A DNA stretch of 43,452 nt from Macrostomum lignano (GCA_002269645.1 NIVC01004520.1:1-43452); one strand, 5' to 3'. Counted from the first letter of the stretch, positions 19,158 to 43,452 are shown. Notes: a model not told the origin generated them from the letters alone. Made by a program: numbers and translations.

Positions 19158-19902
19158 TGTGGTAGTGCTTCAATACTGTAATAATGTGGTAAGTGGGTGC
19201 CTCCCACTGAACTGTTTGAATTTTGTCCTATTTTTGGTCGTTAATTTGTTGTTCATCCCGGGTTTGGCCCTCCTATGTCCACCTTAAGGTGCTGCCCTGA
19301 CGTCACCCTCCCGTCATCTACCGCTCCCTGGTTCTGGCCCCCGCCCCCAGTTCTGGCCTTTGTGCCCCTTTATTTGTTCATTGTTAATTTTGCCCATCTT
19401 CTCTATCTTAATCTTTGTTTGGCCCTAATTATGTCTGCAATGTCCATTTTAATTAACATTTATCCCTTTTTATGTTCGTTATGTGCCACTGTATGGACTG
19501 TTCTATAGTATTTATAGCTTGATGTGAGCACCGTCAAAATAGTTGTCCTTTGTTTGTTTAGGTTTTGTTTGTTGCTATTCCTCCTTTACATTTGAACTGT
19601 TAACTTCTTATGCCTTAATACTTGGATACCCAATTACTTGCAAGTTAATCAACAACTAATATTGTCTAATTTATAGTCGCCTTCACGGCACCGCCTTGCG
19701 TCTCGTAATATTTTTCACATTAGTAATAATTATCTACAACTTATCCTACTTTACTAATAAACAAATTCAACTTGTTACTTGTTGCTTATTTAAGACCATA
19801 GCTTATCTTTTAGAGTAATTTGCCCGTGGGGCATAAAATAACCCAGTCTCATCTCAAAGAAAGCTCTAAGACTTCTCAACATTCCGTAATACACAAATTA
19901 CA
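19158..19902 (+). mobile_element. LTR-like unit with a PPT upstream and a PBS downstream
   Basis: AAGAGGAAGAAAT precedes TGT at 19158 (alternative start TGTAAT at 19177). The unit ends ATTACA at 19902, followed by g and TGGTGGCAGCG at 19904-19914. Extra PBS-like motifs at 20131 and 20166. Confidence 0.6.
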
Positions 19903-20493
19903 GTGGTGGCAGCGCTACTCTACTGGAAGTAATCAGTCAAGCATTTGAGGTATATCAATTCGGTGTCCAAGGACCCTATCTGAACACTTGTGCCTAACGA
20001 AGACTGCTTGTCTACAACCAAACTACCCTCTACCCAGAATTGAGGACCCTGGCAGTCGGAGTACCAAGAGAAGTTTCGTTGAGATTTGTCTGTGCAATAT
20101 TTCCAGATTTAATTCATGCAAATTCAACATTGGTGGCAATTCAAAATAAAACTGCCCCACCTCATTGGTGTCAGCAAACTAGCTAAAATAGATTTATTGC
20201 CAAATCCCTCACCCCCTTACTTTTCTTTCTCTGCCCCTACCTCAATAATATACAATTTCCTAGAAAACTGAATTTGGGCAAAATAAATATTTTGCACCAT
20301 GTATTTTGTTTTACTACATGAAATATTTGGGGAAATATTTTTGTTATAAATGTATTAAGAAATCAAGGGTATATATAAGAGTGATTTTGCAATAAATAAA
20401 CTCTGTCTATTAACTGTGAACAAGTATTGCAAACAAAAATAAGCAGTTTAATCTATATATTTCAAAGTCTTTTGAGTTTAATAGTGACTTATT

Positions 20494-21768
20494 CAGTGTT
20501 GGGCACTTCCGTTACCGAGTAACTTGTAAATGGTAACGCAAGTTACTTTTTCGTAAAGCGTTCCTTACGCAAGTTACTTTCCTATTTTGGTAACGGAGTA
20601 ACAGTAAGTTACTCAAATTTCAGAAGTCCATTACAGTTACTTTGCAACAATCGCAATATTTAAATTTAAAACTGATATGCTTAGCTATTACTCCAGTTGT
20701 CACATTTTTAGCATTTTTCATTCCTAAATTCAAAACTAAGTGAATAATATCATACGGTATTACGCTGTAATTAATAAAGAAATACTTGAAACATGTTTTT
20801 ACTTTGTTATTTTCGGTAAAATATTTTTGCTTTTCATTTTTAAGTTAATAAAAATATTTTGTTTAGTTCTTAGAAACAAAAAACTAAAGAAATAAATTCA
20901 TCTGTAGTCTCCACAAATCTACTCAGTGATCGACGTAGCCAGGAATTTTAATTGGGGGGGGGGGCGGGTTGGCCTGGCTGGCCATGCCTCATGCCATTGC
21001 CACTTTTAGCGCCGCAGGCACTCATTTTAGTGCCGCAAGCACTTATTTAAGCACCGCAAGCACTCATTTAAGTGCCGCAGGCACTCATTTAAGCGCCGCA
21101 GGCACTCAATCGCCTCATGGTTTTTGGTACCCGCTACGCCCAACCTTACCCCCCCAGGTGGGATGTCTTGCAGGTAGGGTGAAGTTGCCACCCCAACAAT
21201 TGTTAAGGCGGCCTCCCTGGCTACACCACTAAAGTCCACTGGCACTGCACTGCACTGCACAATAATTTAATATTATGATAATAATTGAAAATAAATAAAA
21301 AGACTAGTAAAGCAGACTATAGAGTGGAGTAAAGCCAGGTACTTATTACTAGCAATGTATTATTAAGGACAACTGAAGTTACGTTAAGTTGTCCTTGTGT
21401 ATTATAACTTATAATGTTATTAAAAATTAAATTGCGTTTGCCTTTAACGTTTCTGACCTTCAGCTTCTTTTCTTTTTACGGAAAGGGCCTAAAGTGATTA
21501 AAATTTAATACAGTTACTGAAATTAATGTTGTTTTATTCTTCCTCCTGGCTTTTGCGATCATTTGTGCTGTTCCAGCGCATTTGCAATGTTAAAAAAGCA
21601 AAAAATTTTGTTAATAACATAGGTAACGGAAGTAAGTAACAGAAATAACTTAAAAGTTACCAGGTTTTTGTATAAAGTTACTAGGCTAACATAAGTTACT
21701 TTTTAAAAAGTGGTAACTTAAGTTACAATAATGCAAGTTACTTTTTTTGAGTAACTTGCCCAACACTG
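20494..21768. mobile_element. hAT-type non-autonomous element (MITE)
   Basis: TIR CAGTGTTGGGCA / TGCCCAACACTG; perfect 8-bp TSD GACTTATT at 20486-20493 and 21769-21776; many subterminal AGTTAC/GTAACT motifs. Confidence 0.93.
20925..21230. mobile_element. Small nested MITE-like insert with internal 21-bp tandem repeats
   Basis: Imperfect inverted ends AGTG..GTAGCCAGG / CCTGGCTAC..CACT; about 5 copies of GCACTCATTTAAGTGCCGCAG at about 21003-21111. No TSD found. Confidence 0.5.
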
Positions 21769-23939: not shown

Positions 23940-24719
23940 CCCAGTTTGCTGCGGGCATCTGTCTCTGTCTCTGTCTCCTGCCTCTGTTTCGTCTCTAGTG
24001 TTCCTAGTGGTCCTTGCTCCAGATTTGGAGTGCCATTCTGTTTTCCGGTCCCAGGTCACGAGTGCCTTCACTTGTGGGCCTTTTCCCCCTGTCACATGAC
24101 ATGTGAGCCTGTCATGTGAGCCAGTCACATGACAGGGCCTTCTTCCTTCTTTAGTCCAAAGTGCAATGGTTTCATCATGGGCTCGCGTTTGGGGACATCA
24201 CGTGCGCTAGGACCCCTGCTTCCTCTGAGGCAGAACCCGCTCGCTTGTTGCTAAAAATAGCAACAGAGTCACTCCTGACTCTCAGCGGGGGTCTTTCTTG
24301 CTATGTGTAATCGATTCTCCCTATAAATGCAGCCCCTCTCATGGCTTGGTTCAGACAAGCCCGTTTTCCGCCTGCGTGCCCGCTTTCCGAGCCCGTTCCT
24401 CAGCCCTTCCTCCGAGATTTCTCTCTCAGTCAGTCTCTAAGTTTGTGTGCCAAGTTTGCGCCTAAGTTTGAACTTCCAAGTCTCCCGACTTTGCGCGTGC
24501 CTGCCTCGAATCGCTCCTGCTATCTATTAGCAGGCCAGCTTAGATCGCCCGAAGCTAGCACCATCGCTCTAACCCCGCACTAGCCCGGCAGGGACTGCTG
24601 ACTGTGGACGCCTCTGCTCGAGAACTGCTAAACCTGCACAAAGTGCTTGACTTTCTCTCGTCTTAGTTATTTGCTTCTACGAGATCAGCACCTCACCAAA
24701 GGCTGCGACTCTACGAAGC
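23940..24719 (+). mobile_element. LTR-like unit followed by a tRNA-Leu-type PBS (24720-24729); inverted relative of 13698-14561
   Basis: Same motif order as the 14-kb copy: pyrimidine-rich stretch, GTCACATGACAG, TTGCTAAAAATAGCAAC, CTATAAAT near 24320, then an identical 22-mer TGGTGGCAGCACTACCTACGCT. The 5' boundary is approximate. Confidence 0.6.
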
Positions 24720-24754
24720 TGGTGGCAGCACTACCTACGCTTCAAGTACTGTTT

Positions 24755-26055
24755 CAGCAAGCATCACATGGCATCAGCAGCATCACATGGCATCAGCAAG
24801 CATCACATGGCATCAGCGGCATCACATGGCATCAGCGGCATCACATGGCATCAGCAAGCATCACATGGCATCAGCGACATCACATGATGGCATCAGAAAG
24901 CATCACATAGCATCAGCAAGCATCACATGGCATCAGCAGGCATCACATGGCATCAGCAGCATCACATGGCATCAGCAGCATCACATGGCATCAGCAAGCA
25001 TCACATGGCATCAGCGGCATCACATGATGGCATCAGCAGCATCACATGGCATCAGCAGCATCACATGGCATCAGCAAGCATCACATGGCATCAGCGGCAT
25101 CACATGATGGCATCAGCAGCATCACATAGCATCAGCAAGCATCACATGGCATCAGCAGGCATCACATGGCATCAGCAGCATCACATGGCATCAGCAGCAT
25201 CACATGGCATCAGCAAGCATCACATGGCATCAGCGGCATCACATAGCATCAGCAAGCATCACATGGGGTGGCATCAGCAAGCATCACATGGCATCATCGG
25301 CATCACATGGCATCAGCGGCATCACATGGCATCAGCGGCATCACATGATGGCATCAGAAAGCATCACATAGCATCAGCAAGCATCACATGGCATCAGCAG
25401 GCATCACATGGCATCAGCAGGATCACATGGCATCAGCAAGCATCACATGGCATCAGCAGCATCACATGGCATCAGCAGCATCACATGGCATCAGCAAGCA
25501 TCACATGGCATCAGCGGCATCACATAGCATCAGCAAGCATCACATGGCATCAGCGGCATCACATGGTGGCATCAGCAAGCATCACATGGCATCATCATCA
25601 CATGGCATCAGCGCATCACATGGCATCAGCGGCATCACATGCATGGCATCACATGGCAAAGCATCACATAGGCATCAGCATCACATGGCATCAGCAGCAT
25701 CAGCATCAGCATCACATGGCATCAGCAGGATCACATGGCATCAGCAAGCATCACATGGCATCAGCAGCATCACATGGCATCAGCAGCATCACATGCATCA
25801 GCATCAGGCATCAGCATCACATGGCATCAGCAGGCATCACATCACATGGCATCAGCAAGCATCACATGGCATCGGCGGCATCACATGGTGATATCGCAAG
25901 CATCACATGGCATCATCGGCATCACATGCATCAGCAGCATCACATGGAAGCAAGCATCACATGGAATCAGCAGCATCACATAGCATCACATGGCATCAGC
26001 AAGCATCACATGGCATCAGCAGCATCACATGGCATCAGCAAGCATCACATGGCAT
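24755..26055. repeat. 19/20-bp minisatellite (GCATCACATGGCATCAGC[A/AA/G/AG]), about 65 units
   Basis: Direct reading. Variant units recur in a higher-order order in the first 800 bp; the right third is degenerate. Confidence 0.97.
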
Positions 26056-26425
26056 GAAAACCGAACGCCTCGAATTCGCAAATCGTAAGATATCGATCGC
26101 CGCCAGTAATGCGTTGGAAAATTCTGACGCGCGAGCCGAGCCGATGGCGTTGCAGGTGAAGTTGGCCACGGTGAACGGCACGCTGAATCTCACTTGGTTG
26201 CACACGGACCCGTCCACCAGGATGTCGAATAAGTTGAGCCTCTCGGCGCAGCAGTCCTGCCTGTTGTAGATGGTAATGAACGACACGAACGATGGTGCTG
26301 CAAGAGCGGCCTCCCACCACTCGTTTTCGTAGTTTATTAGAGTGTGCGAGCATGACCCAGCAAACCTGTCCGGGTTTTTGTTGCCGTCGATGCCCCCCGC
26401 TTGTGCAGCTGCAGCTTGGTGCGAT
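26045..26425 (-). pseudogene. F-type lectin (fucolectin) domain exon, frameshifted
   Basis: GIDGNKNPDRFAGSCSHT..EWWEAAL..ITIYNRQDCCAERL..YLTICEFEAFG carries the H..RxDx4R fucose-binding signature. Phase-1 acceptor ctgctgcAG at 26427-26426. Lesions: a frameshift near the G-run at 26399-26394 and a 5-bp GGCTC duplication near 26135. Confidence 0.88.
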
Positions 26426-27535
26426 CTGCAGCAGGAACAGAATACATGGCCTGCGTAATGGGCCTCCTCAATACGTGCAGCGCAGTACTAAATGTGTCTG
26501 AATCTCGCGCAACAAATCCCAGTTTGATTCATTTGGGGCCTGTAGCTCGATGGGTTGTCGTGCGATTCACCACCCGTGAGGGTCAACCCAACATGGCACA
26601 GAGAGTGCACATGCCTGACGATTAGAAAGTCAAGTCAGGGCCGCTGTACAGCCTGTGTGAGCGAGTGTGTGCCTGTGTACAGTCTTTGTGCGCTTGTATG
26701 TGCTCAGAAGTCAGCGGGAGGGCAGAATTGCCTCACTATGGTTGCGGCACGGTATCGCTGAAGATGTTTCGTCAGTGTCCCCCAACCCTCTTGCGAATGT
26801 GTATGTTTTTCGTAGACAGGATTCCAGAATGCCTTGCTGAATCTAGTAGGAGAGGGAATCCGGCCATCACAATGTCCTTCTCGTGAGCCACGAGTGCTCT
26901 CCGAGCAGTCAGTCTCAAGGGTCATCTCCTATTATTATTATTAATATTATTATTATTATCATATCAAACTCACTACGGAGTGGTCAAAGACCAATAACAC
27001 CAATCGTGCCCCATGGCTACGAAGGGTTATAGTGAAAAGTAGTGAAAGAATACAAAGTTAGACGATGGAAGGAGAGCAAGACAAAGAAAATAAAAGTCAA
27101 AATATTGATCAATGTGGTCTTTGAGAACTTGACATTTGAAAATAGATGACTTGATGCCATGATTAGCTAATGCTGCAGGTAGAGCATTCCTTAATTTATA
27201 GTATGTGGGAGTGAAGCACTCCTTTCAAGGAGGTTTCGAAGGAGGAGCTGTGCTGTTTGCTGTTAGAACGGACACCATGGTGTGACTGTAGAGCAAACGG
27301 AGGGAGAGGCTCATGCTTGGGCGCAACCTAGGGATCCACCCGGCCGTTTCTATTGGCAACACACGCATGTAAGTCGCTATGCGTACAACATCAAATGTGC
27401 ATGGTGCGACTTTAGCCACCATTCTGACTCAGCTCAATAATTCAATAAATATACTAATCGCTATTATTCTCGCCTTCAAGCTTTCGGCAACTATCGACTA
27501 CAACAAGCAGTCTAGCCTCGTTTCACTCACTACAG

Positions 27536-27586
27536 TGGCGTCGCAAGCAGGATACGAACCTGCGCGGGGAAACCCCATTGGATTTC
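27536..27586 (-). other. 51-nt copy of the 3' half of mature tRNA-Ser (extended PBS); not a tRNA gene
   Basis: Reverse complement is GAAATCCAATGGGGTTTCCCCGCGCAGGTTCGTATCCTGCTTGCGACGCCA: anticodon 3' side, long variable arm, T-arm, G73 and CCA. Confidence 0.9.
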
Positions 27587-29137
27587 CATTCCATCCGGGA
27601 CCAGCTCGTCGCGACATGCACCTCCGACAAACTGCGCAGACGGCTGCTCCAAGAAGCAGACATCACGCTGGAGGATGCCCTGCGGAAGGCCAGAGCATTC
27701 GAGGCTGCGGAAGAGCAGGCTGCTGAGATGGAGAAGACCACCGACGCCCAGGTAGCTAACCTGGCCAGGAGCAGCAAAACAGCGACAGACAGACGCGGAC
27801 CCGCCAGCGAACCGAGATCAAAGCCGAGCCAGATGAACATCTGCTACCGATGCGGCGAGCGTGGCCACGCCACCTGCGACGCAGCCAGAGGCAGGATCTG
27901 CAATAACTGCGGTAAGCCAAATCACCTGGCCAAGGCGTGCCGTCAACCGTGCTCAGCCAGCAGCAGAGCCCGGCAGCAGATTCACGCCAACGCAGACTGC
28001 ACGGTCCCTGACGCCGTCGCCAGCGAAGACGTGTTCACCCTGCACAGAAACGGCACCTACCCGGCTGAGGTCTCGCTGAAAGTCCAAGTGGGAAGTCGGC
28101 AGCTCTCGATGATGATCGACAGCGGTGCCAGCTGCAGCATTATGAGCAGCCGCACTTTCAAGACGCTCAATCGGCCTCACCTGCGAACTCCAGAATCAGA
28201 AGTCAGAGCCTATGGCTGCTCTGCACCACTCAACATCTTCGGAATCGCCGACCTGGAAGTTCGCGTCGGAGCAGTCAGCACCGTCGTGCCCTTCCACATC
28301 ATGGATGGCGATGGTCTCACAATACTCGGTCGCGATCCCACATTCAGGCTCGGAGTTCTCAAAATTCAGCGCCCGGAGTTCAATGCGACGGAAGCCGTGA
28401 ATTCGAACAGCGACTCGGCGCGTCCGTCGCCACAGCTTCAGGACATTCTACACCGGCACAAAACAGTCTTCGAAGGCATCGGATGCATCAAAGGTGTACA
28501 GGTCAGAGTGCAGCTGTCAGACAACGCCGTGCCAGTCTGCCACGCGCCATCCCGGGTGGCGGCGCACCTGAGAGCAGCCGTGGTGGATGAGCTGAAGGCA
28601 CTGGAGCGGCAGGACATCATCGAGTCAGTCAAGGGTCCCAGCACCTGGGTGGCACGCATGGTCGTGGTGCCCAAGACCGATGGCGGCGTTAGGATCTGCC
28701 AAGACCTTCGCGACCTGAACGCCTTTGTGGTCCCCGAAAAGCAGCAGATTCCGACCCTGGACGAGGTCACCGAGGAGATGTCCGGAGCCAAGCTGTTCAG
28801 TGAGCTGGACATCCGGAAAGCCTTCTACCAGATTCCGGTGCACGAGGACAGCCGCCATCTCTTCACGTTTAGCACGCCGCTCGGACTGATGCGACTCAAG
28901 AGGCTGAGTATGGGCTTCACCAACGCTTCGGAGATCCTTCAGCGGGTCATGCTGGGCATCCTCAGCGGCATCGACGGTGTCAGGTGGGTCCACGACGACG
29001 TCATCGTCTACGCCGCGGATGCCAAGCAGCACCACGACAGACTGGACGCCTGCCTTCACCGCCTCCGCGAATTCGGCATCACGCTGAACAAGGTCAAGTG
29101 CAAGTTCGCCAAACCGGCTGTTGAATTTCTCGGGATG
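27578..29137 (+). pseudogene. Element A gag (C-terminal part)-protease-RT, cut at FLGM by the element B insertion
   Basis: RDQLVATCTSDKLRRRLL, CX2CX4HX3C and CX2CX4HX4C knuckles, IDSGASC, WVARMVVVPK, LSMGF, VHDDVIVY. Confidence 0.92.
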
Positions 29138-31603
29138 TGTTGTGTACGAAGCCGAGCGGCTCAATATCGCGCAAACCTAAACTTTGCCCAGAGGGCTGTG
29201 CCGCGCTTTAGCCCACGCGTATATTTCTACCATAGATAAGGTTATAAAGGTACTGAGCCCAATACCCAACATCTCCCCTTTTGATTCAAAACACAATGGG
29301 TCCTTCAGTCATAGGACTTCATTTGGGGGTTGACCTGAAGCCGAACAGGTTGTCGGCGGTTTCGTATGGGCCACCTCGTTTGCGGCTCGGGTTCTCTGGG
29401 CTTGCTATTCCGTCTTGCGTGCAACGATGTCGCATCACGATGTCGTGCTTCAGCTGCCAGGACCGGTAGTCTTCTTCTGAGCAATCTCCGATTTCTTCTC
29501 AGCACTCTACCGCTTGCCAGTTTGACCAGGAAGTCATTGTTTTTCATCGCTTCGACGATCACACCGTATCGATCCCACTTCTTGGTCTGGACGTCTTGCA
29601 CTGCAACTCTGTCTCGCATTTTCAGTCTTGGTAGTTAATGGGCTGCTTGGTCGAATGTCGGACTTGCACAGACTTCTTTCTTCGATGCCGATTGTTCGCA
29701 ACATTTTTACTGGGATCGCGTTGATAAACGCACCCGTGTCTGGCAGTGCGGGAATGACCCTCACTCCATCGTCAGTTTTGACGCTCAAACAACAACAACA
29801 ACAACAGAGTACGCTGTCAGTTCGCAAAAGCAGCGTCAGATGGCTCGCTTCGAAGCTTGGGCGCGAACAAAGGCCGCACCGCCGGCAGAGTCCGGGGCGC
29901 CGGCGTCAGCCAGCAGACAGTCGACGTAGCGCCGAGTCCTCGCCTGTCCCCGCCGGTAGGGTGCCTGCAACGTAAGTAGCAGCACCTCCTGCACCGGCTC
30001 CGGACAGTAGGCCTCGGCGCGGATGACGTGGCCTGCCAGCTGGAGTCGCCGACGGCGCAGCAGATCGCTAGGACGGGCCAGGCCGGCGCGATGATAGAGC
30101 GCCGTGTTGGTGACTCGCTCGTTGCCGATCTTGAAGGCGGCGCGCAGCAGGCCAGCGTGCGCCGCGTCAACTTGAGCCTCGAGCGAGTCTGTCAGCGTCC
30201 AGGTCTCGGCGTTGTATAACAGGACGGTCTCGATCACCGCCTGGAACAGCGCCGCCCTCTGGCGGTCCGGTAGGGCCTCGGACTGCAGGACTGACCTTAT
30301 AGAACGAAAGGCAGCCCAGGCAAGTCCTCGGCGACGCCGCAGATCCTCGCGGACGTCGGGAACCAGACCGCCGAGGTAGACGAACTGCTGACATCTTGGA
30401 AGCTCACTCGCCTGTCCGTTAGCGCCTCGGCAGAAGATTGCAGCCTCGGTGTCGTCCGGCACGCATAGCACGACGGTCTTCTGCGTGTTGACCACCAAAC
30501 GCAGAAGACCGTCGACGCTCAAACGCACACAGCTTGATGCGATTTCGCTATTCTCCGTCTTCGTTGCAGCAAAAATCGAATTCATATTATCGCTTGTCTT
30601 GTGTGGCTTTCCATTCCTGCATTGCTTAGCAAAATGGTTAGCCTTACCGCACTTGGTGCACGATTTCCCCCAGGCTGGACATTTCTCCTTTCCGCGTTCG
30701 TGCTCACATCCGCAGAATTTGCAGATTGGGTGCTTCGCCACTATCTGACTTCGTTGAGCGGGTCCACCTGCCTGGCGGGCATCTGCGGCGGCAGTTTGCT
30801 TGGCCTTCTTGTAGCTCGAAACTCTTCGAACTGCAGAGATTGTCGACGTCTCGCCCTTCATCGCGGCACAATTCTTCTTGGAGCTTTCCATTGACTCACA
30901 AATCGTCTTGGCTCTTTCTAGTGTCAGCTCGCTGCCTTCTTCCAGCAACTTCTCCACTGTGCTGTGATCTCGAAGCCCCATGACGATTCTGTCTCTGATC
31001 TGGCACTCCGCACATATACCACAGCAGCGCTCAAAGTTGCATCGCGATGCATTTCCTTTATTGCCACGTACCAGTCGCTGAACGATTGCCCTCCATCTGA
31101 TTCCGTAACGAAAACTCGCGGCGCTCGAATATTTCATTTCGCTGGCCCGTGATGAACAGCTCCAGGGCCTTGATGATCTCTCCGGCGTCGTTCTTGTTCT
31201 CCTCGGTCAGATGCGGCAAGCTGTCCACGACGCGCAGTGTCTCCATGCTCAGGCATTGGCGTAGCGCGAAAAGACGGTACTTCTTTTTCTCGTCCTCGTT
31301 GTCCAGACTGTTGAGTCCTGAGAGCTCCTCGAAGGCCTCCCACAGTAGCTTCCAATGTGGGTATAGCTCCTTCTGTGACTCGATGTCGAAGTGCGGCGCA
31401 CTTCGGACGTCGATCTTGGGTGCCATCTTGCACTTTTGGGCTTTTCACTTGGCTGCTTGCGATGCCATGTTGTGTACGAAGCCGAGCGGCTCAATATCGC
31501 GCAAACCTAAACTTTGCCCAGAGGGCTGTGCCGCGCTGTAGCCCACGCATATATTTCTACCATAGATATAAGGTTATAAGGGTACTGAGCCCAATACCCA
31601 ACA
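29138..31603 (-). mobile_element. Gypsy element B, non-autonomous deletion derivative (gag, protease start, integrase tail), inserted antisense in the RT of element A
   Basis: LTRs 29138-29271 and 31468-31603 (TGTTG..CAACA; 3 substitutions and one 2-bp indel). 5-bp TSD GGATG at 29133-29137 and 31604-31608. PBS TGGCATCGCAAGCAG; PPT AAGGGGAGA. gag MAPKID..; LPDTGA; VLRRNRRLL tail; no RT, RNase H or integrase core. Confidence 0.95.
29791..30513 (-). mobile_element. 5'-truncated RTE-like non-LTR retrotransposon inserted in element B
   Basis: FVYLG, LLYNAETWTL and LQLAGHVIR C-terminal RT motifs; (GTT)n tail; 11-bp TSD GACGCTCAAAC at 29780-29790 and 30514-30524. Removing it restores CVRLSV-KTDDGVRVIPALPDTGA. 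Confidence 0.92.
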
Positions 31604-31608
31604 GGATG

Positions 31609-33412
31609 CACCTGTCAGCCAAAGGCATCCAACCAGCTGCTGAGAAAATCCGCGCAATGCAAGACTTCCGGCAGCCCGCCAATGTCTCAGAAGTTCGGTC
31701 GTTTCTCGGCACCGCAACTTTCTGGCGAAATTCATCCCAAGATTCGCCGACGTGTCAGCCCCGCTGCGCCATTTGACCAAGAAGGGCCAGCCATGGGAAT
31801 GGACTGCCAGCCACACTGAGGCGTTCAGCACAATCAAGAAGGCCATCGCCGGAGCCGACACGCTGGCGTTCTTCGACCGCAAGCGGCAGACGGAGCTTCT
31901 GGTGGACGCATCTTCCATCGGTCTCGGCGCCATCCTCACCCAGAAGCAGCCAGACGGCAGCAGCAGACCCGTGGCCTACGCCAGATGTGTCAGCAGGTGC
32001 CGTGCCAAAGGATTCAGCCTTCAGCAGATCTGAGACTCTTCAAGGACTGACACGGAGATCCAGGCTGCACTCAGCGCGATCAAAACCGGCAGCTGAACAT
32101 GCTCGATCCGGTGCAACGCTCACTCAAGTCCAGCAGCAGCGAACTTTCCGAGAGCGACGGAATTCTGCTCCGCGGAGATCTCATCGTTGTCCCCGAGTCG
32201 CTGCGGAGACCGATACTGCAGCTGGCCCATACGGGACATCTCGGTGCGGACAGAACCCTGAAGTGACTGCAGACCAAAGTCTGGTGGCCAAAGATGCGCA
32301 GCGACTGCGAAGTATTCGTCAAGTGCTGTGTCGGTTGCCAAGCAGCGGCCACGCACGTGCACCAGACGCCTTTGAAGCCGACGGAGATGCCGGGCGGACC
32401 TTGGCAACTGCTCGGCATGGACTTCTACGGCCCGGTGCAAGGTCAGATGCTGCTGGTCACCACGGACCTGTGCTCCAAGTACCCGGAAGTCGACATCATG
32501 CAGTCAACGACGGCCGGCAACGTGACACCGCATCTGAGACGGCTGTTCGGTCGGCACGGCATCCCTGCTGAGGTCATCACGGACAACGGACCGCCCTTTA
32601 ACTCTGCCGACTTTCGCAGCTTCCTCAGCGGATACGGAGTTCATCATCGGCTCATCTGTCCGCTGCATCCGGAGTCCAACGGAGCCACCGAGCGTGTCAA
32701 CCGCAGCATCGGGAAGGTCGTGAAGACTGCTGTCGCTGAAGGTCGGAACTGGAGAGAGGCCCTGGACGACTGGCTTCTGGCGTTCCGCACAACGCCTCAC
32801 CGAGCAACTGGGCGGACTCCGGCCGAGCTCTTCATGGGCAGGCCGATCAACGACGGAATCCCAGCCAGCAGGCAGCCGAAGTCATCTGACGTCAGCCAGG
32901 AAGCCGTGAAAGATGAAGAGTGCGTTCGACAGGCGCTCGGCCGCAAAGAAGCACCGCATCGTTCCCGGCATGAGTGTTCTTCGCAAGCAGCAGGCACGCA
33001 AAAAACGCAGCTGCCATTCGAAACTCAGCCATGGACGGTGCAGGAGGTTCGAGGCGACACCTGCGTCCTACGGCGAGGCCAGCAGTATTGTATGCGGCAC
33101 GTGACCCAGCTGCGGCCTCTGATGGAACCGGCGGGCCAGTCCACCGGCCAGTCCACCGGCCAGTCAGCCGGCCAGTCCGCCGGCCAGTCCACCGGCCAGT
33201 CCGCCGGCCAGTCCGCCGGCCAGTCAGCCGGCCAGTCAGCCGGCCAGTCAGCCGCCGGCCAGTCAGCGCCGGCCAGTCCGACGGCCAGTCAGCTGGTCAG
33301 TCCGCCGGCCAGTCCGCCGGCCAGGCCGCTAGTGAAGAAGCAGAGTCTGTGGCTCAGAGACGGCATCCAAGAGCAGCCCGCGACACGCCGAAGTGTTATA
33401 CGAGTTAAGTAA
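31609..33412 (+). pseudogene. Element A RT end, RNase H (partly deleted) and integrase, with stops and frameshifts
   Basis: HLSAKGIQP resumes FLGM; LLVDASSIGLGAILTQ; AHTGHLG..CVGC; GPWQLLGMDFYGP; VITDNGPPF; ESNGATER. Confidence 0.92.
33134..33325 (+). repeat. 12-bp tandem repeat (GGCCAGTCMRCC) encoding (GQSA/T)n in the integrase tail
   Basis: Direct reading; in frame within ORF 32294..33412. Confidence 0.9.
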
Positions 33413-33947
33413 CTGATCCGCATTTCCTGAAGCGGCATAACTCAAGCTGAAGCGGTGTACTTCGTAAACAGTCAATTTTCTTTAGTTCGAAGTTTTTTTA
33501 ATTCCTTGGGGGGGAGAAGTGTAGGCAGCGCCTACTATCGTGTGTGTTGGGGGGTTGTTAGCGGCTGCGCTGCGTGACTCTGCTAGCTCAACCCTTATGC
33601 GTACAATATCAAATGTGCATGGTGCGACTTTAACCACCATTCTGACTCAGCTCAATAATTCAATAAATATACTGATCGCTATTATTCTCGCCTGCAAGCT
33701 TTCGGCAACTATCGACTACAACAAGCAGTCTAGCCTCGTTTCACTCACTACAGCAGCCTCTTTGCAATAGGGACGAGAATGGCCAGCATTTTGTCTGTCA
33801 CCGCCTCATCTTCAACAGCGATGCCATTGCTCAAAGCGGCCTCTCGGAAAAATACGATACGAGAATAAAATTTCAAAGGAGCTACTAAAAGGACTAAAGG
33901 ACTAAAGCTAAAAAAGGAGCAACTTTCTTCAGCTCGCGCGAACTTAC

Positions 33948-34253
33948 CGCGCACAAAGACGTCGCACAGGCCGGTGCTGACCTAGGCGTTGGCATTGGAA
34001 AACGCCACAAAGTCGAACAGCCGACAGGCCTCGACCAGCCAGTAGAAGCCGAAGCAGTCCGGCCTGCGGCTGCACACAAAGCTGCAGTGTTTGTCGCTGA
34101 GTGCGGGCTGCGAGCGAAACTCGTCAGAGCGACAGCGCTGCCCGTCACGTTGGCGGTGAATTGAGCAGATCCGCCGGGGGTCTTCACCGCAGCACCCAAC
34201 AGGGCCACAGGAACAATGATGGCGACAAGACGGCAGTGAAGGCTTTGCTGCAT
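33948..34253 (-). pseudogene. Exon 1 of a signal peptide + PAN/apple domain gene (one frameshift, one premature stop)
   Basis: ATG at 34253, MQQSLHCRLVAIIVPVALLGAA; a frameshift near 34118 leads to KHCSFVCSRRPDCFGFYWLVEACRLF (PAN Cys pattern); TAG at 33984; then VSTGLCDVFVR and a phase-1 donor G|GTAAGT at 33947. Confidence 0.72.
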
Positions 34254-34504
34254 TACGAGTATTTTTAGTGCGGCCGATGCGGGTTTTTTCAAAGTCCAAC
34301 TCGAACTGATGCAGATGAAGCTTGTGCTTGCCGAGGTGCGAGCCCATTGTATGCTTGGCAACTGTGCTCGGACATGCCGCGGTGATAAAAGCAAAGCATT
34401 CTGATTGGCTGAATTCACTTGCATTGCTCCAAAGTATATACTTGAAAATTTATACTATTAACAAGATCTATATACTACTAGTTTACTACTACTAACTGTA
34501 CTCT

Positions 34505-34590
34505 TTACTAGAGCTTACTGTTACCTACTCGAGCTTACTGAACTTACTCGAGCTTACTGTACTTACTCGAGCTTACTGTACTTACTCGAG
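34505..34590. repeat. 19-bp tandem repeat CTTACTCGAGCTTACTGTA
   Basis: About 4 copies, read directly. Confidence 0.85.
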
Positions 34591-35226
34591 ACGTGTCTAC
34601 CTTCTGGTTCTAAATTGATCCCTGGTTCCCTGGACTGACGCTCTCTATAAAAGGAGGCGGATGGATACAACAAACTGCCGCCCATCCCAAGCGACTCGGA
34701 ATGTGCTGTTGTATCTCAGCAGAAGACATCCGGGCTTTCCACCATGAGCCTCACGGGCTACACGAGGCACCTTTTACTCCGTGAAAAACACCCGAAGCTA
34801 AATTAGCCATTTTTGTGGCCTAGACAGTTAAATGAGCAGCATTCTGGCTGCCAATGCCTGGCTTTAACAAATATCGGCTGCTCCACCTCCGGTGAAACCC
34901 ATTCGTCTGTGAATGATGAGGCCTGCGAACTCGGGAACAGCTCGCGGTTTCTCCGGGCAACCAGACGAGTCACTTTCAACCCTAGCGCTGCAGAACCGCT
35001 TGGAGTTGATAGAGCATTTGTCCTTGTCTATGGCCTCACTCAGCCGGTCAAAGGCAACAAGGCGAACTGAAACGTTTGGAATCGTAAAACTTGACTTTTA
35101 TGGGTTAAGACGAGCGAACCGGGGCGCGAGTTTGTAAATATTGATTATTGACACAAGGCTTGATTCCCTAAAGACGTCGAACTTCGCATAATTACTGAAT
35201 ATTTCATCCTTCATCCTTCGATCGAG

Positions 35227-35278
35227 ATGAAATCAGATTTCTTGTTAGTAGCGGTAATCTTGGTGCTTTCATTTCTTG
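35227..35278 (+). CDS. Exon 1 (signal peptide) of a secreted knottin/ICK peptide precursor
   Basis: ATG AAA TCA..CTT G|GTAAGT encodes MKSDFLLVAVILVLSFL with a consensus phase-1 donor. Confidence 0.85.
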
Positions 35279-35373
35279 GTAAGTCTGGTGGCTTAAGGTG
35301 GGAATAGTTAAAGATTTCTATGAACACTAATCTTTCAGTTAATTGCTGTACACTTGAGGTCAAGAAAATAAGA

Positions 35374-35640
35374 GTGATAGCCGGAGTGACAATCAGTGAT
35401 AGCCGGAGTGACCGGAGTGACAATCAGACTGATATAGCCGGAGTGACAATCAGACTGATAGCCGGAGTGACAATCAGACTGAGACTGATAGCCGGAGTGA
35501 CAATCAGACTGATAGCCAGATTGACAATCAGAGTGATTAGCCGGAGTGACAATCAGATTGATAGCCGGAGTGACAACCAGAGTGATAGCCAGAATGACAA
35601 TCAGAATGACAGCCAGAGTGATTATCGGAGTGACAGCCAG
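35374..35640. repeat. 24-bp minisatellite GATAGCCGGAGTGACAATCAGACT in the knottin intron
   Basis: About 11 variably degenerate units. Confidence 0.92.
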
Positions 35641-35676
35641 AACATCGTAGTGCAAGCCGAACTCTTTATCCTGCAG

Positions 35677-35834
35677 GTAGCACTTCAGGATGCACTGGTC
35701 GAAGAGACGCCGGCAGCAGCGTGCCCAAGTGCAAGAAGCTGAAGTCAAAGGAGTTTTGCATATTCGACAATGAGTGCTGCTCCGACAGATGCTTGCCATA
35801 CACGAGGCTGAAGCCCTACCGCGACTGCGAATGA
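35677..35834 (+). CDS. Exon 2 of the knottin precursor
   Basis: Acceptor ctctttatcctgcAG at 35675-35676, phase 1. Reads (G)STSGCTGRRDAGSSVPKCKKLKSKEFCIFDNECCSDRCLPYTRLKPYRDCE*, with a C-x8-C-x5-CC-x3-C-x11-C framework. Confidence 0.85.
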
Positions 35835-35992
35835 ACAGGAGTTCAGCAGGTGATCTGTGTAATCTGGATGTCGCTACATGTAGGTACATTGTACAATGTT
35901 CAAAAGATCCTGTTTTATTGTGCGTGTATTTAATGTAAATTTGAATCTTTTCAACCATAATCGTAGATATTTTCTTTCATCTCTTACTGTTC

Positions 35993-35998
35993 AATAAA
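35993..35998 (+). promoter_or_regulatory. Polyadenylation signal of the knottin gene
   Basis: AATAAA 159 nt after the stop codon. Confidence 0.6.
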
Positions 35999-36108
35999 AC
36001 TTGCATGGCGTACAGCTTTCAAATACTCGAAAAGAAAATTTCGTCGTTCTTTATGACGGCTTTCGATGTGTGAACGTGTTTTTTCAGATCAAGTATCTAT
36101 AAAGTCGA

Positions 36109-36147
36109 GTCTGTCTGTCTATCTGTCTGGCTGTCTGTCTGTCTTAG

Positions 36148-36204
<57 letters not shown>

Positions 36205-36298
36205 GCCTGTCTGTCTGTCTGTCTGTCTGTCTTAGTGTCTGTCTGTCTGTCTTAGTGTCTGTCTGTCTGTCTTAGTGTCTGTCTGTCTGTCTGTCTGT
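36109..36298. repeat. (GTCT)n microsatellite with CTTAGT interruptions
   Basis: Direct reading. Confidence 0.95.
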
Positions 36299-36899
36299 AG
36301 CTGGTCTCCGCCGATCTACAATGCATGTAACTAAGCTTTTGTGCAGTTTCGAATCTCAATGTCATTCCGGCTTATCGGACTGACAATTAGAGTGGCTTAG
36401 TCAATGGAGGTTTAAATTGAGGTCAAGTTTCCTTTTTGACATGTGATGTATGTACCCACACTGTACAGCACATGTAAATGTATGCACAATACAAGAACAA
36501 GCAGTTGCACCCGTCTTTGCTTTGGAAAATGTGTACTTTTTCTCAGTACTAGCTACTTATTGTAACAAATTATAAGTAGCGATTGCAACGGAATTGTAAA
36601 CATGAGGGCGTCAACAAGCTATTAGTAAGATATATGTACACGAATTTAGATGTACAGTATTATACTAAGTACGTCCCGGCTATTATTTTATTGTCCTAGG
36701 GTCCCACACTAAGATAATTAGTTAACTGTAAAGTAAAGTGTGAATGCGCGAATCTAATGAAGCCTCTTTCTATTTCAGTGAGTATTACGCTCGTATAGCA
36801 AAAAACACCCCGCGGCAGGCACACCGCGGGGCGCTCAAACCGGCCGGGAGAAGCAAACCGAGGAGAGGCTCGACTTAGTCTTAGACAGCACTTAGACAG

Positions 36900-37560
36900 C
36901 ACTTTTCTCTACTGTATTCATTTTGACTATAAATTGCTATGCCAGGTTTAACAAATTTCTCAATGATTAGCAAGAGAGTGGCCTTGTCTTATAAGACAAT
37001 AGGTCAAATGATAATGTTGAAAGATATTGTCTTATTCTACATACTAGGCCTATTCTAAAAATCTAGCTCTAGATACTTTCTAAGAACCTTCATAGTGTTT
37101 TAGCTTTTTTCCAAAAGGGGTTCATTGATATTAATCTTACAATTTATCCAGTGCAGTGCCTTTGACTTGAAGGCTGTCCTTTTTATATTTGAACTATTTA
37201 TCTAATCTCCTAAGTAAAGTTATACTAATTGATGATATATTTAGACTCAAATATTTATATTTGAATTAAGGATTTACATTAAATGGTTTTGTGCAAATTG
37301 TTCAAATATTCTTATTGTGGCCATTCTAGTGTGTGCAGCAGTGAGCCCCCTTATTTATATACTTAAAATATACTTTTATCATAGGCGACACAGGTGATAT
37401 TTCTTCTTACTCTATATATTTCAATCCCACCATTAAGCCACCAAGTTGTAACAAGCATTTTGGCTCTCTCTTTATTAATCCCACTGCTGCAACCAAGTTG
37501 TTGCAGGTCTACTTCTGTCTTGCCACCATAGTTGTCTCTCTATTATTCTATTAAATTTCT
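36900..37560 (-). mobile_element. AT-rich internal segment, three PBS-like motifs and LTR 3' end of a non-coding LTR family (copy 1)
   Basis: Closely similar to 41368-41671 plus 42309-42630. PBS-like motifs at 37423-37443, 37477-37495 and 37521-37528, each preceded on the minus strand by ACA-ACT. Confidence 0.75.
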
Positions 37561-39214
37561 ACTGCGCTTGTTTTTATTGGTCTCAGGATTATCCAGTTGG
37601 CGCAAATCTTAGTGTGACGGTGGACTTTTCTTTGTGCCACCCATTTTTGATAAGTCTATAAATAGACCTGGTGCGCGCCAGAGGGCGATACTTGTTTTTG
37701 ATTTTGGCTCAGTTAGGAGCCTTGGACAATCAATCTCATTCTTAATTAATTCAAGAATGCAACACTTAGTCTTCAAGCTACTTTTTGTCTTAATTAAGAG
37801 ACAGCCCACATACTAGAGATCCCGTGAGTTTAGACGGTGTTCTCTGACTGCCTGATAGAAGAAGTAGCTGTAAGAACCTTAGACCGCTAGACCTACATTA
37901 TAGAGAGCAAGAAAGTAGAGTAAGGCACCAGAGAACGACTCGTAAATCAATTTTGCACCCCGAATATCGGCCGGTGTAAGTAGACGACATGCATTGATCT
38001 TCTCTGTATTAATCATTAGTTCAAGCTTGCTTGCAGTTGATATGCTGTTTTTTGGTATGATGATATGCTACTAGAAATTTGTCAGCACTGTTTTTATAGT
38101 CCGTCAGCATGAGCTACATGTTGAAGTAGCTCGATCGAGCATTTTAACAACGTGTCAGTTTAGGCGGGATTTTAAATTAGCTTTAATTTAAGAATATGAT
38201 CGTGCACGCGCTATATGCGGGCGGGTAAATCTCAGATTGAAATGTACGTAAGTTATAAACAAATTTTTTCTTACATCAGGAATTTCATTGTTAAATTAGA
38301 AGCAATTGTACATGAATTTAACTTTCGTTCATAAAAAACTGATTAAAAAATATTTTTTTAAACTTTTAGTCAGAGTTTATGTTTTTTTGTGGCGATAGCG
38401 ACCAAAAACGTATTTTTCTGACTTGTATCTTAAGTACGTTTTTTGTTTCATAATGTTTTTTGTGCACGTGTAATATATTTGTCTATGGGAAAATGACTGA
38501 AAATATTGGGGAAAACCTTCATCTGTGAGCTTGTGGATGTTTTACCGCTGTGTTTTCAATATTTATGAACTTATTTGGCCCTGTCTCGATTGCATGATAT
38601 TTGTCTACTGTTAAAAAATTCCTGTAAGGTGTAAGTTTTCTGATAAACAATGCCAACCATTATGATCTTCAGTGATTCATTCTTTCAGATACATTTTAAA
38701 TATTGTTATTCCATTTTATCTGCGACTGTCAATGCACTGTTACTTACTTATGCCTATTGATGTTACATTTAGACTTTTTTCATAAGCACAAAATTTCCTG
38801 TAAGGTGTAAGTTTACTCAGCTCATAAGCATGTAAATGTTCCTAAATCTTCTAATTATGTAGAAAAATACTAAACAAAGAGTAGTTTTTCATTGCATGTT
38901 CTTGTGATTTTACTAAAGAAGTATAGACCTTATTAAGTTCATTATATTGGGTTTTAACCATTTATAGCCAAGTAGCATACTTAAGTAAGCAGTTTTGTTT
39001 ATGTATATGTTTGTGTGAAAATCTGTGATGATTCACTTCTAATGATATTCACTTTTGATCTTATGAGTATATCTTGAGCTCTAACGCTCAGTAATCCACA
39101 GAAAAATTTATTAATTAATTGTATTTAATGACCCCTTAGAAAGCCTTTTTAATTAAGAAGCATATCTAATGCTAGATCCGAAGGAGCAGCGTAATTCGTT
39201 GTACGAGTATGTTA

Positions 39215-39795
39215 AGTTCATTACAGGTCCTCTATGCATTTGAGAGTTTGGTGGATGGTGGATGAAGGAACTTTACTGAGTTCCGCCATTTCTTTGCATG
39301 TCCATCGCGGATCGATTTCCAGCAGACCACGGATGAGTTTGATGCTGCTCTCGGTCCGCACTTTCCGGGGTCTCCCAGATCTTGGCTCATTCAGAGTCGA
39401 AGTGCAGCCATCTCTTGAAGCGATCATACCTCTTGTACACATCGCGCTGGCAAAGTTCATCCTTGCTGTACGCGTCTACAAGCTGTAGGTGACTTGTGTA
39501 GCTGGCATTCCTCGCAGCCATTCAGATTTAATTTACCACCGCTGCTCTTCCTGCGGTTCTCTCCATAACCGCGACGTCGGCCGAAGAGGGAAAGCAATGG
39601 TGATGACAATCGCGGTGGGGTTATAATAATGCGAGCTAAGAAAGGAGAAAGGTGCAAATACGAGCTAGATAGCTCAAGTGCGCAGGAAACGACTGCTGCT
39701 GGTCGCAGGACAGCTGTGGTAACAGCTGCAGCGACTAGAGCGATGTCTGTGGTAGAAATGGATCGATTGCACGAACTTTTGAGACGCCCCTTGTA
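39215..39795 (-). mobile_element. Mariner 5' fragment (TIR + decayed N-terminal HTH of the transposase)
   Basis: Minus strand TA-CAAGGGGCGTCTCAAAAGTTCGTGCAAT is a mariner-type TIR. ATG at 39508 with one in-frame stop, then NEPRSGRPRKVRT..LLEIDPRWTCKEMAELSKVPSSTIHQTL. Confidence 0.85.
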
Positions 39796-39924
39796 ATTTT
39801 TTGTACCAGCTGTCGATACTTAAGGTTCTGGGTTTTCCCACGGGGATAGAGTAGTCAAGTGGTTACTTTACTTTATACTACTGATGGGAGGCACGTACAG
39901 GAGCCGCGAAAAGGGACAGGACAA

Positions 39925-39927
<3 letters not shown>

Positions 39928-39957
<30 letters not shown>
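39928..39957. repeat. (AT)15 microsatellite
   Basis: Direct reading. Confidence 0.95.
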
Positions 39958-39960
<3 letters not shown>

Positions 39961-41239
39961 TTAGTTCCCAGTTTTGCTTTAGTATTGCTTTGCCATTTCC
40001 ATTTTTCCTATAGTTTTCAGTGCCATATCTGCTTTGCATAGTATTTTCCAATCTGCAAGTTTTTCTGTTTTTTCTTTTTTGCCAGCATCATTTTGGCTCG
40101 TTTTTTACTGTTTTACATTTTCCCAGTGCCAGTAGCTGTACGCTTTTCATTGATTTTTATGGTCTGCACTTCCTAAGTCCAGTGCAGTTCAAGTATCTGT
40201 TTCGGTCTGTTTTTGCTTGCGTATTTAAAAGTAGAAATTAAATCGGGAATATACAATAATTCTACAGACAATATATTTGATCGGTGATGGGAACCTTAAT
40301 CAAAAGTTCAAAAGGAAAATTTATAAGAATTTTCAAGTTCTAGCAATTTCAATTTGCAGGTTTCGATCGCCATATTAAATTTCAGTAAAGATAAATAACC
40401 CAGTTGAAATCGTTTCTTTGCCATCAATAATAAATTCCGTCCGTTATCAGTCCGTCAACGGTATGTGTTTTCGATATATATTAAAAATGGTTTAAGTACC
40501 GTGTATTCCGTTTATTTTATAAATCAGGCAGATTCATAGCACGTTAAATTTAGTAACTATAAACAGTTTCAATTTATAACAAAATGTTACTCAAAAACAA
40601 AAAAGATTTTAATGAATACTACTAACCAGTAGAAAGATAACTCTAACAAAACAAAAATTACAATTTTGTGAGTTAAATAAACAAACTGTTTGTCTTCGGT
40701 ATTAATCGTTGTCAAAATACCCTTCGAAAAAACAAACAGCATTCTTTCTTGAAATTCAGGGTTACTTGTGGTTTTAAGTAGAAAAATTATTATATTATTC
40801 TTTTATCTTTAGATGTAAAGCATTATTTTCCATGCCACTGAACTTTTATTTTTTGTCAATTTTTTTACTTCTGTGTTTGAGATTTACCCGGGCGGGCAGT
40901 TGGCGCAGCGCAGCTAGGATCACCGTGTCACAATAAAGCAGGTCAAAAATATACTTCTTCACGGGACGCTACATGGTGGGAAAATACGCGTATATGGGTA
41001 GTTACCCCGTAGTATTCTTCTGCCTTTAAGGCTGAGAAGGCTCCCTGTAGAAGTTGACACGAGTGATATTGATTATTAGAAAAGACTAAAGAGCTAGCGG
41101 AGCTAAATCTATTTTATTTAACAACTATTGCCAATTTGTTCTTCTTTAAAATTATTTATTATTTTCTCTGTATTTAGTACAGAGAGTACAGTATTCTACA
41201 GTACTCTTCAGTACTCAATTCTACAGTACTCAATACAGT

Positions 41240-42846
41240 ATTCTACTGTATTCAGTTTGACTAGGAGCAGTTTTATGATAGACTACCCAATACAATATAT
41301 GTACTCTTACCTTTAGAGGCCTAGTCAAGTAGAAGAATGCTAAGGTTAAGGTATACTGACTATCTATCACTATAAATTGCTATGCCAAGTTTAACAAATT
41401 TCTCAATGATTAGCAAAGCCAAAAGAGTGGCCTTGTCTTATAAGAAAATAGGTCAAATGTTAATTTTGAAAGATATTGTCTTATTCTACTAGGCATATTT
41501 AAAAAATCTAGCTCTAGATACTTTTCTAAGAACCTTCATAGTGTTTTAGCTTTTTGCCAAAAGGGATTCATTGATATTAATCTTACAATTTTTCCAGTGC
41601 CTTTGACTTGAAGGTTGTCCTTTTTATATTTGAACTATTTATCTAATCTCCTAAGTAAAGTTATACTAATTTAGAAGCAATTATCACTTTCTAGGAACTT
41701 TATTTCTAAAAACACGCAAAAATTATATATTTGTTTTAATTTGTGAAATATTCTCAAATAGGGCCTATTCTATGTTTGTTATAAATATACACAATCAAGG
41801 CTGTATAAGTAAGAGCAAAGTTGGAGGTAGGATAGGAAGACCAACCCATGCACTTGTATAATACCTGTGCTCACTTGTTTGATAGAATATAAACAAATTT
41901 AGTTCTCAGATTGTTGTTCATTTCTAAGAGAATTGTGAAGAAGGTTGAAAGTTGCAATTAGGATTCATGCAAAGAGTAGTACTAACCTAACAGTAATCGC
42001 TGTGACCCTCTAATCTCGGTAATGCCCAGACTGGAGAGAGAAAATACATATATTAGTAAGACTGCTTAGGCCATAAACTAAGACTATTTAACCCATTTAC
42101 TAAGAATGCTACCAGACCATATACTAAGAATGCTACCAGAACACTACAAGAACGCTACCAGAAATATATGAGATTCAAAGAAACAGTTAAAACATTAAGG
42201 CAAGATTAAAGTGTCAATAGTAGAAATTTAATGGAGAGAAAGTAAGCCCTATGACAACTTTGGTGGCTTAACAATGGATTTTATATCGTACATGAACACC
42301 CCTAGCACACTAATTGATTATATATTTAGACTCAAATATTTATATTTGAATTAAGGATTTACATTAAATGATTTTATGCAAATTGTTCAAATATTCTTAT
42401 TATGGCCATACTAGTGTGTGCGGCAGTGAGCCCCCTTATTTATATACTTAGAATATACTTTTGTCATAGGTGATATAGGTGATATTTCTTCTTACTCTAC
42501 ATATTTCAATCCCACCATTAAGCCACCAAGTTGTAACAGGCATTTTGGCTCTCTTTATAAATCCCACTGCTGCAACCAAGTTGTTGCAGGTCTACTTCTA
42601 TCTTGCCACCAAAGTTGTCTCTCTATTAAATTTCTATTGCTGACAATAAGGTTATGCTTGGTTTGTATTAGTTTTCTAACTGTTTCTTAGAATCCCATTT
42701 AAGAGGTTTCTGGTAGCGTTTAAGGTATTAGTTTGGTAGTGTCTAATATGTTAGTCTGGTAGTGTCTAGTGTATGGCCTGAGTAGTCTACTGGTACTTTT
42801 ACTGTTCTTCCAGTCTCTAGGGCGTCACCTAGATCAAAGGGTCACG
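41240..42846 (-). mobile_element. Copy 2 of the non-coding LTR family: LTR 42616-42846, three PBS-like motifs and AT-rich interior with a 637-bp extra segment
   Basis: PPT at 42847-42860; LTR CGTGACCC..GAGACA; PBS-like motifs at 42604-42611, 42560-42578 and 42508-42528; interior homologous to 36900-37560. Confidence 0.75.
42001..42256 (+). repeat. Short LTR in opposite orientation inside the extra segment, followed by PBS-like TGGTGGCTTAA (42261)
   Basis: TGTGACCC..CCTATGACA; homologous to 21865-22126 and to the reverse complement of 42616-42846. Confidence 0.7.
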
Positions 42847-43452
42847 GCTCTTCTTTCTCTGGAATTCCTTTGTATATTTCCCTAATCCTTTCTCTTAGTA
42901 AGTTTCTGAGCACTTCAACTTTTAGTTAGTTTTTAAATAACTAACTTGGTAAGAATTTCAAGTTTTAAGTCTGAGAATATTACTATGAATTCAGCAAATG
43001 AACAAGCTAAGCACCAGTTGGTTTATTTGGGAGCAAATTGGCTTGTATATATAGGTCTTGGAGGCTACATTTATAACAAATTATATTTATTGTCAATATT
43101 TCGCATAGTAAAACAAATGCTAAATTATTCCTAGTTTTGTGCACGGATTCAACATGGCTAATAATTGACTATTTTACTTGTATAAATCGCAATAATAACT
43201 ACACTACTATTATAGATATTTATTTTAGGCACATAAAAATACAAAAAAAAGCTTAAATAGGAGTACAGGTTAGCACACTTATTTCAATAGAAACCTCTCA
43301 AATATCAATGAGATAACCTAGATAAAAGAGCATAATATTGATTAGGTAAAGATTTGACTTGAAAAAGTAACTTTATTATTCTAACTAACACTGTGCCATT
43401 TCTTATGGATACTACTATGTGCAGGATTTAGTATAGATTTCTTGCATTAAAA

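Follow-up and report, generated by a model that had tools for sequence, protein, structure and literature searches.

Does a short stretch of a retroelement-rich contig of Macrostomum lignano carry a genuine gene for a secreted, knottin-like peptide? An initial annotation had proposed, at positions 35227-35998, a hidden two-exon gene encoding a secreted, toxin-like knottin. We examined this proposal in the whole stretch of DNA to which it belongs, 43,452 nucleotides of assembly GCA_002269645.1 (NIVC01004520.1:1-43452), referred to here as the window, with all positions counted from its first nucleotide. We conclude that a real secreted knottin-like peptide gene is the best reading of the locus, with a probability of about 0.6, a figure that covers no particular function.

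By direct reading of the sequence, the start codon is the ATG at 35227-35229 on the plus strand; the frame is closed by a stop 22 codons upstream, and no other in-frame ATG intervenes. All the elements of the two-exon gene with a junction at 35278/35677 were found where they had been placed by the initial annotation (Table 1), including the consensus phase-1 splice sites (donor TTG/GTAAGT and acceptor TTTATCCTGCAG/G, the slash marking the splice point) and the AATAAA signal at 35993-35998, which falls 159 nt past the stop codon (TGA, 35832-35834). Joining both exons gives a 69-aa product identical to the one proposed; if the intron is retained, the frame terminates after 26 codons. The coding part of exon 1 corresponds to the n- and h-regions of a signal peptide and is identical in the GenBank copy described below, while exon 2 contributes the c-region GSTSG, then C23-TGRR27 and then a six-cysteine domain. 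The seventh cysteine that had been noted ahead of the GRR site is also present, with C23 preceding GRR (25-27). GC content is 54% in exon 2 versus 35-47% in the flanks and UTR, and GC3 of the CDS is 63%.

Regarding the flanks, the TATA-like element is a possible core promoter, and the pyrimidine-rich tract next to the ATG is possibly 5' UTR or a candidate acceptor for spliced-leader trans-splicing, a process that affects ~39% of M. lignano genes (PMC5730564). A second AG located 12 nt into exon 2 (GTAGCACTTCAG/G, window 35677-35688) is a candidate in-frame alternative acceptor, whose use would remove STSG and leave Cys23 adjoining the signal core. Downstream, at window 36109-36298, ~47 GTCT units interspersed with TTAGT form a (GTCT)n microsatellite that begins ~110 nt after the poly(A) signal of the gene.

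Table 1. Coordinates of the gene, its predicted product and its immediate flanks in the window.
Feature	Position	Strand	Description
TATA-like element TAAATATT	35135..35142	+	Read from sequence; 85-92 nt upstream of the ATG
Pyrimidine-rich tract ending in AG	35200..35226	+	Read from sequence; directly 5' of the ATG
Exon 1, coding part	35227..35278	+	52 nt; Met1-Leu17 and base 1 of Gly18
Intron	35279..35676	+	398 nt, phase 1; GTAAGT donor, pyrimidine tract and CAG acceptor
24-nt minisatellite in the intron (CCGGAGTGACAATCAGACTGATAG)	35371..35641	.	Tandem Repeats Finder
Exon 2, coding part	35677..35834	+	Gly18 (bases 2-3) to Glu69, then TGA
Putative mature peptide D28-E69	35706..35831	+	42 aa, 6 Cys, if cut after RR27
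3' UTR	35835..36015	+	181 nt, includes AATAAA

A word-indexed search of the 69-aa sequence against 5.8 billion proteins returned one match, PAA85982.1 (hypothetical protein BOX15_Mlig026414g1 of Macrostomum lignano, UniProt A0A267GL20), which is also 69 aa long and 99% identical. The sole difference lies at residue 67 (D67G), an Asp in the window and a Gly in PAA85982.1. This protein is encoded on contig NIVC01000299.1 of the same assembly, GCA_002269645.1, the only contig recorded for the variant. Window 24468-43452 and NIVC01000299.1 are collinear, with 94-99.8% identity, and the CDS span annotated on the latter (10001-10687) runs from the equivalent ATG to the equivalent stop. When all GT..AG pairs were tested on this contig, only the equivalent of 35278/35677 yielded the deposited protein.

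For the GenBank annotation of M. lignano, RNA-seq reads were mapped (STAR) and assembled (StringTie, TACO); the resulting transcripts were then split at trans-splice and poly(A) sites known from experiment, TransDecoder supplied the ORFs, and models that were non-coding or overlapped repeats were discarded (PMC5730564). Since this annotation consists solely of RNA-seq transcript assemblies and ORF calling, a spliced transcript with the junction equivalent to 35278/35677 exists. The transcript-derived model therefore supports the gene and shares the junction that had been proposed; on the authority of the published annotation, the lack of a spliced transcript, which the initial annotation had named as a refutation, is thus answered in favour of the gene. 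The gene is not hidden, as had been thought, given that it is already public as BOX15_Mlig026414g1, though unnamed and unclassified. Because the genome contains much duplicated sequence at >=95% identity (PMC5730564), we read the window gene, from the sequence of both contigs, as an allele or a recently duplicated copy of the deposited locus. In sum, it is a genuine, transcribed, lineage-restricted two-exon gene of M. lignano, an already annotated orphan whose product is plausibly a new knottin-like peptide.

Both available copies of the gene are intact. They diverge by ~1.3% in both the 5' flank and the CDS, where one synonymous change (in the Cys56 codon) accompanies the non-synonymous D67G, and are identical over the whole 3' UTR. 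As CDS and flanks diverge alike, there is no evidence of purifying selection, and the comparison is too shallow to tell either way. The intron is 477 nt long in NIVC01000299.1, the copy number of its minisatellite being unequal between the copies. The 24-nt repeat is open in several frames and gives rise to spurious ORFs on both strands. We rejected two of these as genes, one of 140 aa (35320-35742, plus strand) and one of 207 aa (35335-35958, minus strand): both are created by the repeat, match no family and are unannotated in GenBank; the former is split differently between copies, and the repeat-encoded end of the latter changes from one copy to the other.

The window is eukaryotic and largely composed of retroelements, with ORFs for reverse transcriptase (RT), RNase H, integrase and gag zinc knuckles. 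An LTR retrotransposon spans 27378-33760, with LTRs of 165 nt that are 96% identical (27378-27542 and 33596-33760) and ORFs for gag zinc-knuckle/protease/RT (27578-29239) and integrase (32294-33412). We rejected the possibility that the gene is part of a transposon: the nearest element, this LTR retrotransposon, stops 1.47 kb short of the gene on its upstream side and hence does not include it, and the GenBank pipeline drops models that overlap repeats (PMC5730564). Elsewhere in the window we found a very GC-rich (62-66%) RT and RNase H element at 1263-3855, a Ty3/gypsy-type RT-RNaseH and integrase pair at 14962-17112, and a minisatellite of 19-20-nt units (CATCACATGGCATCAGCAG) at 24715-26080, which creates a 376-aa ATG ORF (24927-26057) with no family match that is probably spurious. 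The window also contains ~720 extra bases (29791-30513) without counterpart in NIVC01000299.1, a 101-nt duplication (29138-29238 and 31468-31568) and a repeated segment (37479-37604 and 42547-42687). Downstream of the gene, window 36900-43452 and NIVC01000299.1 11800-17050 are not collinear, the block order on the latter being 14383, 15906, 12376, 13030, 14372 and 15419; either the copies differ structurally or they were assembled differently. On NIVC01000299.1, annotation continues downstream with an LSM-domain protein and a 1621-aa protein with VWA and TIL domains (18105-18413 and 19257-20687), both past the window end.

We then turn to the product. The precursor opens with MKSD (residues 1-4), followed by a 13-residue hydrophobic core, FLLVAVILVLSFL (residues 5-17), whose mean hydropathy of 3.3 is the maximum of the precursor, and by G-S-T-S-G. 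On inspection, this N-terminus looks like the signal peptide that had been proposed, and small residues occupy -3/-1 relative to positions 21/22. Applied by hand, the established -3/-1 rule for signal peptide cleavage would best fit a cut after Ser21 or Gly22. The six-cysteine framework reads C-x8-C-x5-CC-x3-C-x11-C (loops 8-5-0-3-11), and the odd Cys23, within C23-T-G-R-R27, leaves seven cysteines after signal cleavage if RR27 is uncut. Cleavage at RR27 is a guess, as the pro-piece would be only ~5 residues long and would carry Cys23; moreover, RR27 is not the sole dibasic site, since a KK pair lies inside loop 1 of the mature peptide. The peptide, described as cationic, is so only mildly, with a net charge of ~+1.7 (42-aa form) or ~+3.7 (47-aa form). 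A C-terminal Gly for amidation is absent.

According to this layout, the 69-aa precursor would enter the secretory pathway, lose its signal peptide and form three disulfides in an inhibitor-cystine-knot (ICK) arrangement, which is defined by the bonds I-IV, II-V and III-VI with the third bridge passing through the ring, releasing a stable peptide of ~4.9-5.5 kDa. A prohormone-convertase-type cut after RR27 would give 42 aa and remove the piece with the odd cysteine; without that cut, the product would be 47-48 aa long, with the seventh cysteine free or in an intermolecular bond. By analogy with knottins, the peptide may act extracellularly as a protease-resistant ligand with high affinity for a protein, perhaps an ion channel or an enzyme, and may block it.

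The initial annotation had recognized in the peptide the ICK framework of O-superfamily conotoxins, spider toxins and some antimicrobial peptides. The C-C-CC-C-C pattern with ICK-typical loop lengths stands. The classical consensus for ICK loop 1 is CX3-7C, which the 8 residues of loop 1 exceed by one; the remaining loops are within the usual ICK range. The conotoxin part of the claim did not hold, as neither PF02950 Conotoxin nor PF08087 Toxin_18 was matched by the precursor (E <= 0.1) or by the mature part (E <= 10). With the same thresholds, the peptide matched no Pfam toxin family; the precursor matched no Pfam family at all at E <= 0.1, and the mature part gave, at E <= 10, only Tryp_inh PF17983 (E 0.045, below the cutoff of that family). 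A loose ICK regular expression found 4 matches in the six-frame translation of the window, compared to ~0.1 in composition-shuffled sequence. The other three of these matches belong to transposon ORFs or the antisense strand, so the cysteine pattern alone is nothing special; what lifts the gene above chance is independent evidence, namely the 69-aa GenBank protein and the unique junction.

Sequence searches returned few matches, and the relevant ones are knottins. Using phmmer against all PDB sequences, the sole relevant match was 6px7, a 'Venom polypeptide', with E 0.025 and Cys I-V in register. An exhaustive HMMER search of 1.84 billion representative proteins gave five matches: the GenBank copy, one Anopheles protein and three (P0002, P0003 and P0005) that we rejected as compositional artefacts, being long low-complexity or repeat proteins without the cysteine pattern. 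The Anopheles darlingi protein, A0A2M4CIE0 (E 2.2e-4, summed over five matched repeats), is a secreted protein of 397 aa with six tandem C-x6-C-x5-CC-x3-C-x6-C domains, which match the Pfam families Conotoxin (4.9e-18) and UPF0506 (8.3e-8); a cluster mate of it is named 'phenoloxidase inhibitor-like'. The peptide, 6px7 and A0A2M4CIE0 have in common the motif E[FY]C-x5-CCS-x2-CL-x-[YF], and BLASTP against the dipteran domains gave 36-50% identity across 14-28 residues. Among shuffles that kept the cysteines fixed, 1 in 2000 reached the observed local score for the Anopheles protein and 0 in 2000 for the 6px7 fragment, both targets being best matches chosen post hoc. Since such shuffles rarely reach the observed score, the resemblance exceeds the cysteine skeleton. 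A joint profile searched against PDB retrieved 6px7 (2.8e-9), nemertide alpha-1, spitting-spider peptides and omega-atracotoxin, all of them knottins, in a result driven by its Anopheles rows.

AlphaFold2 without an alignment (model 1) gave a mean pLDDT of 76.5, and Foldseek found no PDB match for this model; empty Foldseek results are common for queries of 40 residues. With an 8-row alignment (model 2), which includes the Anopheles knottin domains and is possibly biased by them, pLDDT was 70.3. Foldseek of model 2 gave ten PDB matches, all knottin or colipase and all non-significant (E 0.5-6, TM 0.32-0.50), among them Aps III, maurocalcin, omega-atracotoxin-Hv1a and its hairpinless mutant, spinach trypsin inhibitor III (SOTI-III), imperatoxin A and colipase. 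Every weak match, by sequence or by fold, is thus a knottin or colipase fold, which lends weak support to a knottin. All the evidence is consistent with a knottin fold and none of it is decisive; we consider this fold somewhat probable.

An unlikely alternative is that the peptide is a real, secreted and cysteine-rich one without a knot, its cysteines pairing otherwise (as in a disulfide-directed hairpin or a ladder) or Cys23 forming a covalent dimer, so that its resemblance to ICK toxins would be limited to cysteine spacing. The seven cysteines left after signal cleavage, the longer loop 1, a model confidence of just 70-76, DSSP elements that differ between models 1 and 2, fold matches short of significance and unmatched knottin Pfam profiles would all agree with this. 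Against it, all the weak structural and sequence matches are knottins, and two knottin sequences resemble the peptide in more than their cysteine skeleton.

We next compared the knottin-like peptide with known systems. The dipteran knottin domains (6px7 and A0A2M4CIE0) are the best sequence matches found and share with it secretion, the C-C-CC-C-C pattern and the motif described above. However, the M. lignano peptide has 2 more residues in loop 1 and 5 more in loop 5, consists of a single domain instead of the six-domain array of Anopheles, comes from another phylum and matches neither of the two Pfam families that the Anopheles domains match. The similarity is too weak for claiming common descent. 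The O-superfamily conotoxins and the spider and scorpion ICK toxins share the cysteine framework and the precursor layout, in which a signal is followed by a short spacer, a basic site and the mature peptide, and omega-atracotoxin-Hv1a (1axh), Aps III (2m36) and maurocalcin (1c6w) are the top fold matches of model 2, at the non-significant E values given. In the M. lignano precursor, however, the spacer has only ~5 residues and contains a cysteine, no profile is matched, and the source is a flatworm, neither a cone snail nor an arachnid. The PF02950 profile takes in the signal region of the precursor, and the M. lignano precursor is without match to it. With the profile unmatched and the wrong taxon, the peptide is not an O-superfamily conotoxin.

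Closer in taxonomy is UPF0506 (PF11703), likewise made of small, secreted, cysteine-rich peptides of Platyhelminthes, described as having a knottin fold and found in the secretome of a cestode (PMC8400842). The initial annotation had called a knottin notable if the host were a flatworm, which it is; yet UPF0506 provides a precedent in parasitic flatworms, so a flatworm knottin is not new in kind. The peptide did not match this family at E <= 10, in the same search in which the Anopheles domains did, and M. lignano is a free-living macrostomorph, unlike the parasitic sources of UPF0506; it is not a UPF0506 member. Finally, nemertides are mucus toxins of ribbon worms, another phylum of spiralian worms. 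These ICK peptides (6ena, nemertide alpha-1, and 9rv3) were matched by the joint profile at E 0.0087, again driven by the Anopheles rows, and the peptide alone matched none of them in PDB at E <= 10.

Homologues are equally scarce. No significant one was found in other organisms, whether among 5.8 billion proteins (word-indexed) or 1.84 billion representatives (HMMER), and a word-indexed search with an alignment including the Anopheles domains returned the GenBank copy alone. A paralogue search, proposed by the initial annotation, found none in the window (tblastn, ICK regular expression and cysteine-density scan), and the 20.7-kb GenBank locus holds one gene copy only. At the level of these searches, the gene is, as far as its sequence tells, an orphan. 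In the literature search, we found no paper with Mlig026414, its accession numbers or the motif of the peptide, nor one joining M. lignano and knottin, and the gene ID is absent from the supplementary data of PMC5816591, PMC5946080, PMC7336406 and PMC12896417. The knottin-like assignment for the BOX15_Mlig026414g1 protein hence appears new.

What such a peptide would do is a matter of low confidence. Our best guess, a tentative one, is that the peptide is secreted from a gland or with mucus for defence or offence. As M. lignano is cultured on diatoms, a venom for prey capture is not expected. We rank this defence or offence role slightly above a reproductive or seminal-fluid one, which seems doubtful, with low confidence in both. 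The same goes for the wider, unlikely possibility of a reproductive or glandular role without venom or antimicrobial activity: the product would be a fast-evolving peptide of the seminal fluid or of the prostate, shell or adhesive gland, or an enzyme inhibitor akin to phenoloxidase or protease inhibitors. The diet that makes prey capture unexpected would suit such a role, as would the 'phenoloxidase inhibitor-like' name of the Anopheles cluster mate and the knottin trypsin inhibitors seen in the weak Pfam trace and in several fold matches; the orphan status fits the rapid evolution that PMC7336406 reports for reproduction-related Macrostomum genes. Arguing against it, the gene ID is missing from supplementary tables published with the positional or reproductive study, and the best match among solved structures, 6px7, is a venom peptide.

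With respect to descent, an origin specific to macrostomorphs, separate from the known UPF0506, nemertean, molluscan and arthropod knottin families, is rather improbable; a free-living diatom-feeder would then use the knottin as a bioactive secretion. It might act as a defensive peptide of the mucus, as an antimicrobial, or in seminal fluid to manipulate the mating partner, with an ion channel or an enzyme as its target.

Least probable of all, and in our view very unlikely, is that this is a functionless young ORF, transcribed in a transposon-rich region and called merely for having a reading frame, with a chance signal-like start and a cysteine-rich frame: the absence of homologues, the lack of visible constraint between two copies, the retroelements and satellites that make up most of the window, the loose cysteine pattern in non-genic frames and the want of a published expression record (in the literature search and the supplementary data of the four papers) would allow it, but an accident would hardly bring together a signal peptide as clean as this, a consensus intron of compatible phase, six ICK-spaced cysteines with CCS-x2-CL, a GC3 of 63%, an AATAAA and a perfectly conserved 3' UTR, nor a knottin similarity beyond cysteine-fixed shuffles.

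Returning to a secreted knottin-like peptide as our preferred reading, the gain is modest, as the gene was already annotated, flatworm families of knottin-like peptides are known and there is no sign of an unusual mechanism. If fold and secretion are confirmed, an unnamed hypothetical protein of M. lignano would acquire a structural class, and a free-living macrostomorph would join the animals that make knottins. M. lignano is transparent, amenable to RNAi and tractable by transgenesis, so that the cell type, processing and role of the peptide would be directly testable, which is rarely the case in venomous animals.
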